Source: Paragordius varius (lineage: Eukaryota; Animalia; Nematomorpha). From it: 64,000 nucleotides of DNA. The notes under the pieces were generated by a model. It made no database searches. It was not told the DNA's origin and saw nothing but the letters and a program-made list of their open reading frames with translations. Below, piece after piece: positions 48,440 through 64,000 of this stretch (its first letter is position 1; each line of letters starts with the position of its first letter). Made by a program: the position numbers and the translations under genes. The stretch is taken from contig OZ176056.1 of assembly GCA_964247055.1 (NCBI GenBank), forward strand, positions 682,001 to 746,000. Reading direction: 5' to 3'.

Positions 48440-50240
48440 CTACACGCTTTTACTTGTTTCTCCTGGCCCTGCCTAAAAAAGAATGATAAATTTTTTTGTA
48501 AAGCCTTGATTTATATTGTACAGTAAAAATCCGAATTCTAAGACAAAACCTGAAAACATAAAGACAATTTTTTTTTAAAAAGCATTATATGTTTTGAAAT
48601 CTTAATTTTTAATGTAAACTATCAATTTACAATTGTAGAATATATAAATTGTGTTCAATATACATCTCTATTTCATACTTTGCATTTTAAAACGAGTTAA
48701 AATTGAAATAATCAAGTCTTAAAAACTATAGCCGTGTTAAAATGATATTTGTATTTGTATTTATATTTTGACGTTTAGTCTGTATAATTTAAATTTACTG
48801 TAAATATTATTACACAGAAGAATAAATTTCATAATTACGAGACCTGATAATAATATTTATCCATCAACTGAGTTTCATTTGAATCTGAAAAAAACAGATG
48901 ATAAATTATTTTATTATTTAGACTGACCCCGGTTACAAATTCTTGCTTAAAATTATTAAAAATAACCAGTCAATACTTAAACAATTTTAACCATATGATA
49001 TCGTTTGAAACAAAATATGAATTTGACATATGGTAAGCTTAATTTGACCAAATAAGTATTTTTAATAATATATATGGTCATAGAAAAGTTAGATTTTCAC
49101 TATTATAACCATTTAACTCTTAATATTATTAAAGCGGGAATTGCATTTATAAGCAATAAGATCGTTATTTTTTAATCGGTCAAACCATTACTTCTCTAAT
49201 ATTCTAATTAATCATTGTACCACTTAAAATAAGTTAGTATCATATTAAATATTTAATTTTAACCCTTAAAACAAAAACATGAAATAGCTGTGGGGGCTTT
49301 TTGAATCAAAAAATCGGCGGGCCGCGTTTGAAATATATATATATAAGCTAATAGAATTTACAGTTAAAATTCACCCTTGGATAATATAAATTGACCCTCG
49401 AAGCATTCAAATTCACCCTAAAATAAATTATGTGTTTTTTGATTAAAAATTACCTTTTTATAATATTTTTAAAATATCAAATTCCGTTTAAAATTAATAT
49501 AATGATAAAAAATAATCTATGTTTTAAAATATATTTCATATCAATGATGAATTATATTATTCCGAAAACACATAATTTATATTTAGAATGAGGGTTTTAA
49601 ATTGCAAGAGTAAATTGGAATAGTAAATGGTATATTTTATTATTCAAACATAAAAAAATAAAAATTCAAACAATATACATCAATTTCTAGTTTATTGCCT
49701 ATCGGATAAAATAATACAGAAAATAATTTTAGAAATATTAATTTTATATTCATAGGCACATTTTTTAAAAATATATTTCCAAATTTTCCCCGTGCCGCAC
49801 CAATTATCACGGAAGTTTTGGACACCCCTACTTTAAACCAAATGAAAATATTGTATATACCATTTACCATTCAAATTCACCCCTGAACAATTAGAATCAC
49901 CCTAAAAATAATTTAGGTGTTTTCGGGCTAATATAACTCCTTATTAATATGAAATATATCTTATTAGCTTAGTTTATTACTTTTCTTTAAAATATATATA
50001 ACATAAGTATTACAAAAAATTTAATTTATTTAAGGGTGAATTTGAATTGTAAATGGTATATATAAAGATTATATTTGATTCCAAAATATATTACTTCTTG
50101 CAAATTCAGTAACCGACACGTTGGGTATTTTAGTGAGATTCTGCGAAATCAAAAATTTGAATTAGATAAATAATGATTGCCTAATAAATATCTAACAAAA
50201 AAGTGATTATATTTTATAACTTGTATATTTTCTGAAATTC
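48440..50240 (-). CDS. Tentative downstream exons of the 52106 gene: 50240-50221, 50140-50095, 48884-48844, 48472-48440
   Basis: Phase-compatible chain giving RISENIQ-NLTKIPNVSVTEFAR-NSNETQLMDKYYYQ-AGPGETSKSV*. Acceptors at 50140 (TTTCGCAG), 48884 (TTTTTTTCAG) and 48472 (TTTTTTAG) are good; donors GTTATA and GTCTCG are weak. The MITEs all fall between these exons. Confidence 0.35.
48521..48800. mobile_element. Tc1/mariner-type MITE, family A (CAGTAAAAAT ends)
   Basis: TA|cagtaaaaatccgaattctaagacaaaac ... gtttagtctgtataatttaaatttactg|TA. Same terminal motifs as the copies at 51610, 55313 and 63144. Confidence 0.65.
49290..49830 (+). mobile_element. hAT-type MITE (family B), interrupted by a nested fold-back MITE; left end degenerate
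   Basis: Right end ttttggacacccct is the reverse complement of the caggggtgtccaaa terminus at 61640. Internal matches to the 61640 copy: cggcgggccgcgtttgaaatatata vs cgcgagccgcatttaaaatatata, and caatttctagttttattgcctatcgg vs caatttccagtttttgccaatcgg. Confidence 0.6.
49355..49630. mobile_element. Fold-back MITE family C, copy 1 (degenerate left end)
   Basis: atttacagttaaaattcaccct ... gtaaatgg|tata ends, with internal attcaaattcaccct repeats. Confidence 0.65.
49860..50056. mobile_element. Fold-back MITE family C, copy 2
   Basis: tata|ccatttaccattcaaattcacccc ... agggtgaatttgaattgtaaatgg|tata terminal inverted repeats. Confidence 0.8.
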
Positions 50241-50667: not shown

Positions 50668-52106
50668 TTTGTTCAATGTCCGTTCTGGATTGATTAGTAT
50701 TAGGTGAATAATTGTCATCTTTGATCTCAATAACTAAACCCATTGTCACAAATATTAAATAATTTTATAATTATATATACCATTTACAATTCAAATTCAC
50801 CCTTAAACAATTTAAATTCACCCTTTAACAATTCAAGTTCACCCTCGAACAATTCAAATTCACCCTCAATTAAAATAAATGTTATTTAAGATTAAAAATT
50901 ACCTATATTTTTATATAATATCAAAAAATAAAAATTTTGTTTTGCATTAAAATGATACTAGAAAAATTAATAACTATGCCACAAAGATTATTTCATATTA
51001 ATAATGAGTTATATTAGTTCAAAAACACACAATTTATTTTTAGGGTGAATTTGAATTGTTCAAGGGTGAATTTGAATTGTTCGAGGGTGAATTTGAATTG
51101 TTTAAGGGTGGATTTAAACTGTAAATGGTATATATTATATATATAAATATTTATTAACTTTTGTAAAAACATTTATAAATATTATATATTAAAATAATTG
51201 TTTATCATTAGTTAAATTAGGTAAAAAAATAATTGTATATCTTTACCGAATACAATTTGTTCACGATATGCTATATGATAAAATAATAAATTAAACTTTG
51301 TTAGCAGGGGTCAATATATAAAAACCGATCTATTGGCTTTGTAATGCAGGTAATTATAAACTTTCATCATTAGTTAATATATATATAATTAGCTCCTCAA
51401 AATTATTCTTAAACACTTTAAATTGATCATCAAGCATTTTAAAATAACTCTAAAAATATTGTGTGTTTTTCTAAATAGCAAAAATAACTTTATTTTTGTA
51501 TTTATAAAATAAAATTTTTTTTAAACATGTTACAGAAATACACCATTTCATAAATATATTTCAATTAATATATATTAATTAGCCCACTCATAATTTTTTA
51601 GTAGTATTAATTAGAATTGAAATCTTACGGATAAAAAGTAAAAATATAAAGTCAAATATTTTTTTATGATACTTTAAAAAATTGATTTATTTAAATGAAA
51701 CTCATTTTTATAAACTGCAAAGTATGAAATATAGGTGAATTAACTCGATCAAATATCAATTGTAATAAAATATAAAATAAATTTTAAAGAAAAAATTAAG
51801 GTTATAAAAGTATGGTTGTTGAAAAAATATTTTTCTTTATATTTTTACGTTTTGTCCGTATAACTTCAATATTTACTGTCCTTATTCTATTAACTAATCA
51901 GTAGACCATATCACTCGAAATATAAGTTTTACAGTGAAAATCTAAAATTATTTTTAAAATTAAAAATTGACATATTTTGCCATTTAAAGTAGCAATCAAG
52001 GAGGTTTTCCTAAAACCACAAATTGGCTCAAATTACCTGTCGTTTGAGTTAGTAGAATACATGCTATAAAACTATAAATTAATGTTCGCATAATAGAATT
52101 CATCAT
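50668..52106 (-). CDS. Small putatively secreted protein, exons 52106-52037 (signal peptide), 51270-51247 (24 nt), 50733-50668 (66 nt); 3' end uncertain
   Basis: Spliced product MMNSIMRTLIYSFIACILLTQTTA-YREQIVF-VIEIKDDNYSPNTNQSRTDIEQ. All junctions are phase 1. Donors GTAATT, GTAAAG, GTATAG; acceptors TATAG, TTTAG. TATAAAA lies ~60 nt upstream of the ATG. No homolog recognised. Confidence 0.65.
50780..51128. mobile_element. Fold-back MITE family C, copy 3 (best preserved)
   Basis: Terminal inverted repeats ccatttacaattcaaattcaccct / agggtggatttaaactgtaaatgg. Each arm carries about 4 tandem ~21-bp units (aacaattcaaattcaccct). Flanked by TATA on both sides. Confidence 0.85.
51610..51878. mobile_element. 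Tc1/mariner-type MITE family A, degenerate copy
   Basis: Right end agtatggttgtt...tacgttttgtccgtataacttcaatatttactg matches the 63365 copy. Left end cttacggataaaaagtaaaaatataaagtcaaatatt matches the 55313 copy. Confidence 0.55.
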
Positions 52107-54217: not shown

Positions 54218-54884
54218 ATCCACTCATCACCTAAGCCCGCAATTCAGTAACAAGATAGATGGTGTTTTGGTTGTTAACGAGTTGAGAATGGATTGAAAAC
54301 AGATTTTGCCGGACGGTTTATTGTAAGATTTGGCTAACTTGAGTTTACTGTAAAGGACTAAACAGATTAAAGTATTATTGCGTACATCCACTCATCACCG
54401 AAGCACCGATTCAGTAACAAGATAGATGGTGTTTTAGTTGTTAACAAGTTGAGAATTGATTGAAAACAGATTTCGCCTTACGGTTTATTGTAAGACTTGG
54501 CTAACTTGAGTTTACTGTAAAGGACTAAACAGATTAAAGTATTGCGTACATCCACTCATCACCGAAGCCCCAATTCAGTAACAAGATAGATGGTGTTTTA
54601 GTTGTTAACAAGTTGAGAATTGATTGAAAACAGATTTTGCCGGACGGTTTATTGTAAAGACTTGGCTAACTTGAGTTTACTATAAAGGACTAAACAGATT
54701 AAAGTATTATTGTGTACATCCACTCAAGCCCCAATTCAGTAACAAGATAGACGGTGTTTTGGCTGTTAACGAGTTGAAAATTGATTGAAAACGATTTTGC
54801 CGGACGGTTTATTGTAAAGACTTGGCTAAATTGAGTTTACTGTAAAAGACTAAACAGATTAAAGTATTATTGTGTACATCCACT
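54218..54884. repeat. Four-copy tandem repeat, unit 160-168 bp
   Basis: Units begin atccactca at 54218, 54386, 54550, 54718 and end at 54884. Stops in the frames read, so no ORF found. Unrelated to the 178-bp satellite. Confidence 0.95.
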
Positions 54885-55034: not shown

Positions 55035-56357
55035 CTACATACATATATAAAAGAGTTTTTTTCTATTTGCATCTCATTAAATTAGTTGATTAAATTGTGG
55101 ACAAAATTTCATTTATCTTATATGCTACTGTGTTACAATAATGTGAATTGGCTATTATAAATTAATTTACCAATTTCTATGAACCCACAGCTGCTAATAC
55201 AAATTAATTTAATTAAAATTTAAATCCTATTAGGCCGAATAATGAAAGTTTCATTATTTTGACAAATTTAAAAATTCTCTGAATTTCAAGTTGCCATAAA
55301 AATAAATACATACAGTAATAATAGAAAATATACGGACGAAACGTAAAAATATAAGGACAAATATTTTTTTTAAAAAACATCACATTTTAAATGTTTATTT
55401 TTAAAACTGATAGAATTGGTAACACAATCAATGTATTTTACGATTGTAATTAAATGATTTTTATAAGATGTGATAAATTAAGGTTTAAACAAGTAGGTTT
55501 GCCTATTGAAAAAAATATTTGTCTTTATATTATTAAGTTTTCATATATTTTCAATTTTTACTGTAGACTAACGTGACTTTAACCTATAATATCAGCATAA
55601 TTAAAACATATTAATACATTTTTAAAACATTTAAAGGTGCAGAAACACATTATACTTAAAGAGCTTAAAACACTTAACTTTTTTGACCGTTTCAAAAAAT
55701 ATTTCTATATTGACCCAATATACATATAAGTTATTTTACAACTTCAAACACTTTTATACTCCCCTAACTCTCAAAAAAATAGATTTCAAATATTCAAATT
55801 TTTTAAAAAAACATTTTTTCAATTTTCAAAAAAAACTTACACCTTTCAAAACTTTTCAAAACACTCAAATACTTTCAAAACCGTCCAAAAATCAAAATTT
55901 TAAAAATTACAAAAATCAACCTTTTCCATTTCTTCAATCACGTGGGCGGTTGCTATGGTAACCGGTGCTTCTTCAATAATCTTTTGATGACGTCTTTGAA
56001 TGGAACAATCTCGACCAAAGAGAGAAATAGCTGTTCCATAACTATCAGCCAGCAATTGAACTTCCAAATGCCGACAATGGCTAGCCAGGGCCATCAAGAA
56101 AATGGGTGATCCTGGGACTTCAGTTTGCACCTTTTAGTAAATAGCATTTATTATTGATAAAATAAATTTTGGTTCAAATAAATTTTAGATTTCGTTTATC
56201 ACAATGGTTTTTGCAATATGTGTATACTGTGGTATTAATAATTTTCTTCCATGAGTAAATGTGAAAAATTATAGCACTTGAACCAAAATCTATTTTTATG
56301 CAAAATCGTAAAAATAAAATTGTGTTGAGAAAAAATCTACATATTTGCTAATAAATA

Positions 56358-57427: not shown

Positions 57428-59736
57428 ATATATAAATATATATATATACATATCATAACTAAATTTTGACATATAACCTTCAAAAATTAACAAAAAACCC
57501 AATATACTTTTTAAAAAACACCCTTAAAGAACCCCCAAAAAACTCGAAGAAAAAGTGTATTTAAACTTGTAATCCTTGTTCACAGTTTGAGATACAAGCC
57601 GATTCATATATTTCAGTTGGAATCAAGTTATTCAAATTATCCAAATCATAATAAGTTGCGGTGTTTTGCGACGCTGAAGTAGAAACATTATTTCCAGCAT
57701 TGGTTATTTGTTTGGTTGTTGAAACAGTAATACTTTTAGTCATGAGAGATTGATTAACAAAATGTTCGGCATTTATACTTTGTTGTAGGGAGCGACTTTT
57801 GACCTCTAAATTTTCAATCTCTATGCCTGCATTTAAAATATTGGATCAAACTAAATTATAAAACGGACAAAATGTAAATACAATAGGGCAAATATTTTCA
57901 AAAAAAGAACGGAAGATAAAATGCTAAAATATATGATGAAAAATCCACCATTGAACTAGAACCAATAACGGCTTGTATCAGAACAAATAGACTTCGGTAT
58001 TTTTTGGACACATAGACAGATCCAGTATAGACTCACCTGCAAAGGAAATTCTTGATTTACAGATTTCTGCCCCCAACTGAAAAGGGAGGCCTAAAACAAC
58101 TTGGACTCAAATCATAGAACAAAACTTTAAATTCCTGAACATACCTCGAAACGCAACAAATGATAGAGACATATATCGTAAATTAATCCATGGAATCCCA
58201 ATAAAGCTGGGCCAAACCAATAATACCGTTGTTTGTTTCCACATAAACTATTTAATTACAATTTCAAATTATGTAAACGCATTTTGAAAAAATACCTTTT
58301 ATTCTTAAAGGCTTAAATGAAAGCCATAAAACAAAAAATTATTTGTCGAAAAACACCCCCTTCAAATTCTAAAACTCATCCCCTTATATATTTAATTTCC
58401 TAGCCTAAATATCCACTTTTAGTTATACAAATGCTATTCATATACCCTGATTACCCTTACAAACCCTTATAATCCAATAAAATACCTAATCTCCTTCACT
58501 CAGATCTGGGTATAGACATGGATGAATTTTATATTTATAATGAAAAAGATTTCAAAAAACATTTATTACCCACTTAAAACCGTATATTAACCCAAAAAAT
58601 TGGTTCAATTTAATCGGAACGAATTCCAAACTAACAAAACGCTTAAACTTCGCAAATAAAAGTGCAAACAAGATCAACTTCAAGTCAAAAGCATGCATTG
58701 CAAATACAGATGGGTAAAAATCCATCTCTTATATATGATTGATATCTTAGCCAAAATATTTATAGTTTATCATAAAAACTCGAAAAAGCCCTATAAAAAT
58801 TGGAGAAAACCCACCAAATAATCAAAAAACCTTTTATGATCTTATAATCACCTTAAAAAACACTGATAACCCTCTAAAAACTCCGCAAACACCCTTAAAA
58901 ATCTAAACCAACTCCACTCCAAGCCAGAGTAGAACAAGGGTGTTTGTCAAAACCGTAAAAGGCATTTAATCACCAAGGGCCATAGCAAATTCCGAAAGTT
59001 AAAAATTATATCCTTATATAAAATCTCCTAATCATTATAACTAGCCTTTAAGTAACTACTTTAATAATTAAAAATTTCAAATCAACTTCTCAAACTCCCT
59101 GAAAAACCTTATTATAAAACAACAAAAAATAATGAAAATTCCTTAAAACCACCCTCAAAAACCAAAAAACCTCAAAAAATCTGAATTCCAAACCTGATCC
59201 ACTCCAAGCCAGGGTAGGAACATGAGCGCTTTGTGCAATCAGGGTAGAAGCTATTTTATCGCCCAAGGCATGCATAGCAAAGGCCGAAGGGCCCAAGAAA
59301 GCCAGGCAGCGGTCCGCTAAAGCGAAGGGCAGGGCCGGATTCTCACTGGCATGACCCCAACCGGCCCAAACTGCATCCGCCCCCGTCCGCACACAAATCT
59401 CTACAATGAGTTCAACGTTGGCGTAATTGTGATTGTTGGAACCGCCTGGAACCGGGACATATTGATCCGCCATTTTTTATGTACTCTATTCATATTCATA
59501 TTATTAAGGGGGATATTTATATATATATATATATATATGGATGAAAGGAAGGTATATTTTAATATTTAAAAAACTAAGAGATGGTTTTTCTATTTCAATT
59601 ATTTATATTTTAATTTATTAAGATAATCTCCTCGGAAGGACCTCGAATGTGGGAAAAATAGATAATTTTACACATCAATCATGCATTTTTAAGGAATATA
59701 TTAAAGTTAAATTGTGAGATTTACAATTTTATCTTT

Positions 59737-60657: not shown

Positions 60658-61426
60658 ATGTTTGGTAATAATTTGTGCTTATTATTTTTGACCGCTACAA
60701 TTTTTATAGGGTAGTTTAATTACTCTAAAGCAGACAAGTTTCCAAAATATGGTATATATCTTAAAAAGGCCTTTCAGATGTCGAAAAAATTATAACAGAG
60801 TATGATTAAAAAAATTAACTTGAACCTAATTTTTTGGTATATAATTGTTAAAAAATAAAAATTTACTTAAATTTTTTTATTTTAGCACATGTTGGGGTAC
60901 TTTAAGAACTCAGTCTTCTTTAAAATAACTCAAAAATAATTTTATCATTAGGCTAAATTTAATAATGTGCTTTTTTAGCCTCTTAGGCGCATACTATAAT
61001 AAATTTTTTAGAGTAAATATGTTAAAAATCTCCATAAACTTCTCTGTGACTTTTTTCCATTAATCGGAACAGGCAAATAAATGTATATCATGATTTAAAA
61101 ACTTTCGGATTACAAAGAAATCTTTGATATATATCTAATATCAGCTACCTTTATTCATGCTTTGGAGATATCCGTTTGGATTATAAAAGTTACTGTAAAA
61201 ATCATAATTTATTATCTAGAAGAGGCCCTAAAAAATAAATTTTAGCCAAACAGATTTCAAAACAGGATATGTTTTCTAAAAGCTATGGCCTAGGAAACCA
61301 CCCCCAACATGCCATCTCGTACAGAATAGGTAAAAAAGTGTTAATTTATTTAGTTTTGGAGTCAGTTGCTGGTAAATGTAAATTAGTGTTTTCTATAATT
61401 TAGAAACTAGAACTCATACAATATAG
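60658..61426 (+). CDS. Tentative small secreted-protein gene with micro-exons and very short introns, divergent from ACC
   Basis: Candidate exons 60658-60710 (MFGNNLCLLFLTATIFIG), 60731-60751, 60778-60799, 60886-60896, [unresolved gap], 61246-61329, 61354-61371, 61404-61426 (stop). Needs one fewer G at 60709-60711 for phase continuity. Confidence 0.3.
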
Positions 61427-61639
61427 TTTTTTTCTAATAAATTTTAAATTTTTTTATAATTCATGGATCTGACGTACAAAATCCCCAAATTTTATCTATT
61501 TCACATGCATAAAATGTAGGAAATGTTTATTTATTGAGGTAACATCCAAAGAACAGCAGTTTATATATCAAATTATGTAGTTTGTAAAAATAAAAAAAAT
61601 AAAAGGGGGTATAAATGACCAAACTAAAATTAGGTTTTA

Positions 61640-61884
61640 CAGGGGTGTCCAAAGCAAATATTTCGCGAGCCGCATTTAAAATATATATGGGCATTTATAA
61701 ATATTTTATTAAATAAATGTAAAAACAATTTCCAGTTTTTGCCAATCGGGTAGATGTATATGTAGAAATTTTGTTTTAAACATTAATTTTAATGAGATTT
61801 TGTGAGCAAATGTTTGCCAATTATTTTTCGAATATTTCGCAGGTCGCACGTGAGGTCTTGGAGGGCCGCATATTGTAAATCCTG
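61640..61884 (+). mobile_element. hAT-type MITE family B
   Basis: Starts caggggtgtccaaa (Charlie/MER30-like terminus), has subterminal gccgc motifs and a degenerate right end gagggccgcatattgtaaatcctg. No clear 8-bp target-site duplication. Confidence 0.65.
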
Positions 61885-62067
61885 GCTTGAATCAATTTTT
61901 TTCGAACCATGTTATGCGCCGAAAAGTATTTATAATTATATATTTTTTCATAAGACCAATGCGCAGTTTCTGTTTTAAATTGTATTTTACAGATTATATC
62001 TAATATTAACTTACGGTAACTTCTAAACGATCGTCAATTTAAGAAATATATACACATATCAAATATA

Positions 62068-62073
62068 TTTATT
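62068..62073 (-). promoter_or_regulatory. Candidate polyadenylation signal of the micro-exon gene
   Basis: AATAAA on the minus strand ~95 nt after the stop codon. The hexamer is common in this base composition. Confidence 0.3.
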
Positions 62074-62166
62074 AGATAAATAACTTAGTGAATAGTTTTA
62101 CTACAATATTTGATCTTTAATATTCAGATGGAAAATCTTCCAAATATATTATATATAACAAATAAA

Positions 62167-63513
62167 TTATTCAGGCGTTGGCTTTAGATTTCCAATGGCT
62201 TCTTCCAAAACTTCTAAAATTAGGAATTATCGGTAGGATTAATTATATATATTGATAGTTTTGTTGTAAATGCTATCTGCCAATATTAAATGTGGCAATG
62301 CATTTTGATTCACAATGTATGTTATAATTTAAAATTTATTTATCTATATATACCTTTTGATATATCGGGATCCTCTAAGCCTAATGCATCTAGAATTATC
62401 ATAAAAAAATAGTTTATTTCCAAAGTAGAATTTATTTGAACTATCGAATGTATTGAATAACAAATTAGATAATGTATTGCGTATTGTTAAATAAATTTTT
62501 TATATCTTGGGAAGTATACTGTAAATAAAACTCATTTTCAATTTATACCCAAAAATTTTCTAGTTCTTATTTGGAGTTTTTTACACCATGTATGATAGGA
62601 TTATCAATTTGGTTATATTATAACTGATAATAAAATTAATAAAAATAATTTTTAAAAAATATAAAATTATATTTAAAATTTATAAAAAATATATAACTTT
62701 CAACTTCTGCTTGTGGAATCATGGAGCCTAGATTAATATAAAAAATAATTAAAATTATCCCATATAACCAGATATTTGATTACATTTTAATTAACAATAT
62801 TTTAAAAGAAAAAAATATATAATTAATTTGTCAAGTATTATCTTATTATTTTTTTTATATTTTATTAAACAATTAATAAAAATATTAAAATTATTTACTT
62901 TCATTTGCTTTGTCGATTAAATCTAATTAAGTTATCATAATTATGAAAAAATGGTTCGTTATATAGGTTCTTTAATTATTAAATGTTTAAAAATCTTTAT
63001 AAATTTTGGTTTTTATATAATAAAACCAAATTTTCAAAGTATTTTTATTAAACTACTAAATTTTTTTGGTTATAATAAAAAATTTCATGGATGTTCTTTC
63101 AAATTTAAACTAAATATATCCCTATATTGTAATTAACTTTTTACAGTAAAAATTGGATTATACAGACAAAATGTAATTTCAAAATAACCATTTTTTTATA
63201 TTTCATTTTTCTTATATAAAATATTTATTTACCACTGTAAAATATAAAATTGATTGTGTTTCCAATATTCATCAGATGACTTAGAAATAAAAATAAGATT
63301 AAATAGTATGGTTGTTTTTTAGAAAAAATATCTACGTTTTGTCCGAGTAATTCCAATTTTTACTGTGATTAGTAAACTGATAAATAATAAAATAGAAAGC
63401 TAAAAATTAATTTTCATATAAAAATTTTATTTAAAGCCTAAATGACACTTTTTTGGAAATTTTTGCTTTGTTAAAAAGAAAGCTTTATTTCACCTTGAAT
63501 AGTGTCCATCATA

Positions 63514-63572
<59 letters not shown>

Positions 63573-63752
63573 TAAAAGCCAAAAATATTATTTTTATATA
63601 TTAAAGTTTGTAACAAAATTATCCATGCAAAAAATATACTGCTAATGCGCTCTTTCAAAGCTAAATTTGAGATATATAAATTATTAATTTGTTAAAAAAA
63701 TTTCAATTTTTAGTATTATAAAGCATACATTTTATGGATATTTTCATGCCAT
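62167..63752 (-). CDS. Micro-exon gene: six symmetric phase-1 micro-exons plus a terminal exon; 5' exon not identified
   Basis: Exons 63752-63729 (24), 63660-63640 (21), 63514-63494 (21), 62922-62899 (24), 62727-62698 (30), 62389-62354 (36), 62213-62167 (47, TAA). All have YAG acceptors. Donors GTATGC, GTATAT, GTGAAA, GTAAAT, GTTATA, GTATAT. Product xGMKISIKSLKERISNMMDTIQDLIDKANESSMIPQAEVENALGLEDPDISKEVLEEAIGNLKPTPE*. Confidence 0.8.
63144..63365. mobile_element. Tc1/mariner-type MITE family A in the longest intron of the micro-exon gene
   Basis: TA|cagtaaaaattggattatacagacaaaatgta ... tacgttttgtccgagtaattccaatttttactg|TG inverted ends. Confidence 0.75.
63516..63567. repeat. (TA)26 microsatellite
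   Basis: Direct read. Other (TA)n tracts at 56362-56389, 56582-56614, 57392-57423, 59519-59538, 59739-59774. Confidence 0.95.
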
Positions 63753-63858
63753 CTATAAAATAGATTACATAAATATTGAATTAACAAAACACAAAAGATT
63801 AACTTTAAAGCAAATTTCCATCAAAGAGTAAAGTTAAAGAATGTCTTTTTATAAATAA

Positions 63859-64000
63859 ACTAGCGTAAATCTCGTGCTGCTACGCAACCCGAGGAAGTCT
63901 TTCGGACTTCTGGGGGGGGGGGGGGGGGGGAATGGCATTTTACGAGGGGAGCGGGAAAAAGTGGGACTAAATTAAAAAAGCGAGACGACTATGTTCGGCG
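63859..64000 (+). other. GC-rich segment, possibly the start of a Helitron-like or other repeat, with a 6-bp hairpin and a G19 run
   Basis: Begins actagcg...ctcgtgctgctacgc. gaagtc-tttcg-gacttc hairpin at 63894-63910, G19 at 63912-63930. Truncated by the window edge. Confidence 0.3.

Follow-up and report, generated by a model that had tools for sequence, protein, structure and literature searches.

We found that the interval running from 63752 down to 62167 of the window (the whole 64,000-nt stretch of DNA analysed here) probably contains, on its minus strand, a small and separate protein-coding gene with at least seven coding exons, six of which are symmetric and only 21-36 nt long, and with introns that are all in phase 1. 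The seven segments themselves are very likely to be real coding exons, as the chain stands above chance because of its composition, its uniform frame and phase, and the heptad peptide that it encodes.

Borders, frame and composition of the exon chain

The original prediction had described six symmetric phase-1 exons followed by a 47-nt terminal exon, and we could verify its coordinates, the AG/GT borders and the stop-free frame. All seven exons lie on the minus strand, and each sequence occurs once within the 64-kb window. They are listed here in the order of transcription, together with a candidate polyadenylation signal.

63729..63752, minus strand: micro-exon 1, 24 nt, phase 1-1, encodes (x)GMKISIK; preceded by ttttatag and followed by gtatgc; 25% GC
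63640..63660, minus strand: micro-exon 2, 21 nt, phase 1-1, encodes (S)LKERIS, one heptad; 43% GC, with flanking introns at 13% and 10%; picked by the unconstrained chainer
63494..63514, minus strand: micro-exon 3, 21 nt, phase 1-1, encodes (N)MMDTIQ, one heptad; GC peak; picked by the unconstrained chainer
62899..62922, minus strand: micro-exon 4, 24 nt, phase 1-1, encodes (D)LIDKANE, the last heptad; 25% GC; backed by heptad continuity
62698..62727, minus strand: micro-exon 5, 30 nt, phase 1-1, encodes (S)SMIPQAEVE; 43% GC; picked by the unconstrained chainer
62354..62389, minus strand: micro-exon 6, 36 nt, phase 1-1, encodes (N)ALGLEDPDISK; GC peak; picked by the unconstrained chainer
62167..62213, minus strand: exon 7, the last coding segment, 47 nt, encodes (E)VLEEAIGNLKPTPE, then TAA; GC island at 62208-62171
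62068..62073, minus strand: AATAAA, candidate polyadenylation signal, 94 nt past the stop codon; chance expectation about 1 per 250 nt at the local composition

TAG precedes all seven exons and GT follows the first six (GTA in four cases, GTG and GTT in one each). Once spliced, exons 1-7 form a single open frame of 66 codons ending with TAA, GMKISIKSLKERISNMMDTIQDLIDKANESSMIPQAEVENALGLEDPDISKEVLEEAIGNLKPTPE, which reads from GMKISIK to KPTPE and the stop. The introns, in phase 1 throughout, measure 68, 125, 571, 171, 308 and 140 nt, the third being the longest due to the insertion of a foldback element (see below). The six micro-exons (24, 21, 21, 24, 30 and 36 nt) account for 156 of the 203 visible coding bases, which supports the initial remark that the gene is invisible to ORF finders. 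Micro-exon 1 carries the sole candidate start codon (ATG at 63748-63746), and micro-exon 6 contains two in-frame AGs, at +9 and +15. The AATAAA is a possible polyadenylation signal, judging from its sequence. An (AT)n microsatellite of about 60 nt (63515-63575) abuts the acceptor AG of micro-exon 3, where it occupies the place of the pyrimidine tract; variation in its length could influence the usage of this exon.

The GC content was 36% for the exons overall, compared with 10-22% across the six introns. When the interval 63752-62167 is ranked by GC content in 21-nt windows, five of the six highest peaks are exons (2, 3, 5, 6 and 7), and the edges of these peaks fall on splice sites and, at the end of the island of exon 7, on the stop codon. 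The sixth peak (63351-63335) is non-exonic and corresponds to an arm of the foldback. Thus, the exons had been rightly described as locally GC-richer islands as far as these five are concerned, but this does not apply to exons 1 and 4 (25% GC each). These two derive no backing of their own from composition, and their place in the chain is supported by heptad continuity. The purine content was 60% in exons and 50% in introns, as would be expected if short exons rely on exonic enhancers. Such short, GC- and purine-rich exons would presumably be recognised by exon definition.

The chain was evaluated with an unconstrained chainer, which scores base composition only and demands AG/GT borders, open frames and compatible phases; symmetry is not demanded. 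It retrieved exons 2, 3, 5 and 6, every one of them in phase 1-1. In 600 shuffles in which composition was kept in 10-nt blocks, the observed score was reached 12 times, four or more symmetric exons of the same phase were obtained 3 times, and the two together were never observed. In a separate run scored with free phases, 3.5% of the shuffles reached the score, while imposing symmetry on the chainer reduced this to 0-1 of 400. Chaining on the plus strand of the locus yielded nothing, indicating that the signal is strand-specific. Application of the same chainer to a control region (52036-48400) led to a mixed-phase chain running through repeats, so the uniform phase 1 found at the locus is not an artefact of the method.

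The bare number of candidates did not, by itself, depart from chance. In DNA as rich in AT as this, every 1.6 kb contains 10-19 symmetric open AG..GT segments, whichever phase or strand is considered, and the locus contains 17 such candidates in phase 1, of which 6 are the exons of the original prediction and 5 are nested variants of these. It could be argued that the chain is a compatible subset picked from many open segments divisible by three, and this would agree with the abundance of candidates, with the shuffles that reach the score when phases are free, and with the unremarkable composition of exons 1 and 4. There is, in our view, a very slim chance that this is the explanation, in view of the fact that no shuffle combined the score with a uniform phase and no decoy chain reproduced the continuity of the heptads (see below), that the GC islands coincide with exon borders, and that the signal is confined to one strand.

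The encoded peptide and the 5' end of the gene

Exons 1-4 encode 29 residues that fall into four unbroken heptads: a hydrophobic residue occupies each of the eight a/d positions (M, I, L, I, M, I, L, A), and polar residues occupy 18 of the remaining 21. Not one of 5000 chains assembled from 74 decoy micro-exons of the same 16 kb, GC-matched decoys included, showed this pattern, and only 0.02% of residue shuffles attained it; the helical hydrophobic moment of the exon 1-4 peptide had a p value of about 0.001. Exons 2, 3 and 4 have a common layout, consisting of a split polar codon followed by L/M-x-E/D-x-I/A-polar, the a/d hydrophobics being the first and fifth full codons. Each of these three exons thus provides one heptad of an amphipathic helix, in agreement with the proposal that the exons are modular helix turns. 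The first 29 residues would be expected to form an amphipathic helix that engages in a short coiled coil, either with itself or with a partner, and the tail of the product, which is acidic, would be flexible. Since each micro-exon is symmetric, the frame is kept whichever one is skipped, and skipping of exon 2 or 3 would preserve the heptad register as well. The figure of up to 64 isoforms put forward initially is arithmetic derived from this symmetry.

Translation from the ATG of exon 1 (63748) gives a product of 65 aa with a pI of 4.4, comprising 14 acidic and 7 basic residues; the peptide is devoid of C, F, W, Y and H. Comparison of the spliced peptide with Pfam identified no family, only sub-threshold noise (Sigma70_r1_1, E 0.013; Pepco, E 0.062). 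A search for homologues of the 66-aa peptide among 5.8 billion proteins provided no candidate sharing three 5-residue words with it among proteins of 36-115 aa, a range that a longer protein containing the peptide would have escaped.

An alternative to a self-contained small gene is that what is visible forms only the 3' portion of a longer, MEG-like gene (MEG, micro-exon gene) encoding a secreted protein, with a phase-1 signal-peptide exon and possibly more micro-exons beyond 64000, the ATG of exon 1 being internal. We consider this rather unlikely, but it deserves to be weighed. The acceptor of exon 1 is normal and its phase-1 frame is open from the first base, and methionine is frequent in the peptide (5 of 66 residues), so the presence of an early ATG is little informative. 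On the other hand, the window extends 248 nt upstream of exon 1 (63753-64000), and a search of this segment revealed no signal-peptide exon. There is no hydrophobic leader after the ATG of exon 1, and the acidic, helical nature of the peptide is unlike that of known secreted MEG products. The sole GC island nearby is the following.

63861..63988, unstranded: GC-rich island on the upstream side of exon 1, at a distance of 110 nt, reaching 95% GC in 21-nt windows and including about 20 consecutive C

This island is open on both strands and encodes no signal peptide; its frame is proline-rich and non-hydrophobic, which also argues against the larger gene. Rfam and tRNA scans found no match, this island included, and it may be a 5' UTR exon, a promoter, or unrelated to the gene. 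Two first-exon candidates were rejected in the upstream segment. The sole ATG-initiated frame with a phase-1 donor in these 248 nt, from the ATG at 63938 to the donor at 63884, reads MPFPPPPPPRSPKDFLGL and is unconvincing, since it is a poly-proline translated from the C homopolymer and lacks a hydrophobic core. The other, a hydrophobic frame at 63820-63770, lacks an ATG, and use of its donor would give an intron of 17 nt.

A signal-peptide-like exon ending in phase 1, as a larger gene would need, is readable elsewhere in the window, at 52106-52036 on the minus strand; it reads MMNSIMRTLIYSFIACILLTQTT, with a phase-1 GT donor at its end. No phase-1 chain was recovered downstream of it (to 48440) with the composition-only chainer, which is crude.

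Comparison with known micro-exon systems

The original prediction had likened the gene to the MEGs of Schistosoma. These have 10-20 very short exons (6-81 nt), mostly multiples of three, separated by introns of 100-5000 nt, and they encode secreted proteins in which a constant signal peptide precedes a hydrophobic-aromatic motif, FL..F..W (PMC10526429). The resemblance holds for the exon/intron architecture: coding sequence carried mostly by very short multiple-of-three exons with longer, AT-rich introns, which evades ORF finders and is hard to annotate automatically. The introns found here (68-571 nt) agree with those of MEGs, at the low end of the range. Unlike Schistosoma MEGs, with their 10-20 short exons and 'sticky' hydrophobic products, this gene has six micro-exons and encodes an acidic helix; there is no sequence similarity. 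Kinship with the schistosome genes was indeed not borne out, there being no homologue among proteins of 36-115 aa, no Pfam family, and no aromatic motif, since the peptide contains neither F nor W.

A closer match in design is provided by the cytoplasmic tails of chicken BG proteins (butyrophilin family), which are encoded by 27-37 exons, mostly of 21 nt but in a few cases of 18 or 24 nt, one heptad each, located behind Ig-V and transmembrane exons; their first codon is split and hydrophobic a/d residues occur at fixed codons, which suggests a coiled coil (PMC5938342). The micro-exon gene likewise shows one heptad per exon, with exons 2 and 3 of 21 nt and exons 1 and 4 of 24 nt. It differs by having four heptads only and by encoding a tiny protein without recognisable domain, with no Ig or transmembrane exon visible. 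The design match is close but the two are not homologous. The cassette effectors KQY and KHI of the pea aphid are also small proteins made from many miniature exons, in this case in an invertebrate living as a parasite or herbivore, and are reported to have a conserved signal-peptide exon and to be salivary (PMC7495047). The micro-exon gene resembles them as a small protein made from miniature exons, the signal-peptide exon and the salivary role being aphid features.

In the literature searched, micro-exon genes were not linked in substance to Nematomorpha, with one incidental co-mention, and the Gordionus montsenyensis genome paper does not mention exons or introns (10.1101/2023.06.26.546503). 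The suggestion that such a system was undescribed is therefore fair for this phylum within that literature. If genes of this kind are transcribed as predicted, standard annotation overlooks a whole class of such genes in the genome, and a parasite phylum outside the flatworms has the MEG architecture, providing a case of convergence for the question of why parasites use symmetric micro-exons. The locus is a compact and easily assayed example, with six junctions in 1.6 kb and exon borders that track the heptads of a helix. One may go further and propose a lineage-specific phase-1 micro-exon system in horsehair worms, in which an exon equals a heptad and skipping yields length-variable coiled-coil or secreted proteins. 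This extension is quite doubtful; if it were true, MEG-like combinatorial diversity would have arisen independently of flatworms and aphids, perhaps for the host interface.

Genomic context and transcript searches

Three quarters of the window (positions 1-47991) consist of a 178-bp satellite (about 272 copies, 91% matches), which gives way abruptly to unique sequence. The remaining 16 kb have a GC content of 21-31%. For the window as a whole the value is 27%, which agrees with the 26.93% of the Gordionus montsenyensis genome (10.1101/2023.06.26.546503). The unique part also contains the 5' part, and only that part, of a metazoan-type acetyl-CoA carboxylase (ACC) gene, downstream of the micro-exon gene and on the same strand.

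60472-54900, minus strand: 5' part of the ACC gene
60436-60308, 60281-60144, 59476-59189, 57626-57570, 57096-56986, then 56130-55900 and a stretch ending at about 54.9 kb, minus strand: ACC exons, with an intron of 26 nt at 60307-60282

The micro-exon chain ends 1.7 kb before the start codon of ACC, which sits 25 aa ahead of the conserved PEEFV motif. Leaders about as short were found in 3 of the 4 other ACC N-terminal fragments among the matches, indicating that ACC needs none of the micro-exons.

We also considered the idea that exons 1-6 are alternative 5' coding exons of ACC, with exon 6 joined to 60441 so as to add an N-terminal helical extension, exon 7 being an alternative terminal exon. 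The two are on the same strand, 1.9 kb apart, and the acceptor tcag followed by ATTTTATG (border between 60442 and 60441) takes a phase-1 donor and leads in frame into the ATG of ACC. Vertebrate ACC genes employ alternative 5' exons, which offers a precedent. This arrangement is nonetheless highly unlikely: such a phase match arises by chance in one case out of three, the coding signature of exon 7 is strong, is its own and ends exactly at the stop, the leader of ACC is about as short as in most of the other fragments, and a GC-rich stretch that appears repeated by eye (61640-61960) intervenes. A separate small gene remains the preferred reading.

Homology to ACC is lost past about 54.9 kb, beside a tandem repeat of four 167-bp units (54218-54884). 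One ACC exon shows 96% identity with a vertebrate ACC and 74% with Fasciola ACC, a weak hint that the DNA is not from a flatworm, and the best matches of the neighbouring ACC ORF are only 70% identical. It may be that the micro-exon gene and ACC together represent a partial and possibly unexpressed duplicate located at the satellite border, in which case the intact frame would not be independent evidence of selection at this copy.

DNA runs containing the locus were found for the source species and for two related labels, and in the DNA runs of one related species (run X5) 25-37% of the 31-mers were present. None of the sampled 31-mers of 61000-64000, a region that covers exon 7 together with some 100 nt of probable 3' UTR, was found in RNA-labelled runs bearing the same species label, for which the contig sets were small (1-30 million letters) and there was no positive control. 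Their absence is weak negative evidence on expression.

Several repeats are dispersed in the unique sequence. The one responsible for the length of intron 3 is the following.

63145..63371, unstranded: MITE-like foldback within intron 3, families D9 and D16, with arms at 63148-63175 and 63333-63360, 157 nt apart

A better-preserved copy with the identical arm spacing (157 nt) is found at 51616-51870. An extra micro-exon candidate at 63362-63336 (27 nt, phase 1-1, KIGITRTK) was ruled out because it sits in an arm of this repeat. The arms of the foldback family are inverted over about 30-50 nt, and fragments occur at 55305-55369 and 57858-57898. Inverted blocks with a 21-bp subrepeat (GGGTGAATTTGAATTGTT-like) are present at 49360-49466, 49850-49918 and 50770-51138, with arms of up to 107 nt and 88% complementarity, and look like another family of foldback elements. 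The GC-rich stretch between the micro-exon gene and ACC (61640-61960) contains inverted short motifs (GGGGTGTCCAAA, GCGGCCC) that, by eye, it has in common with 49300-49850, and the two may be copies of a dispersed repeat.
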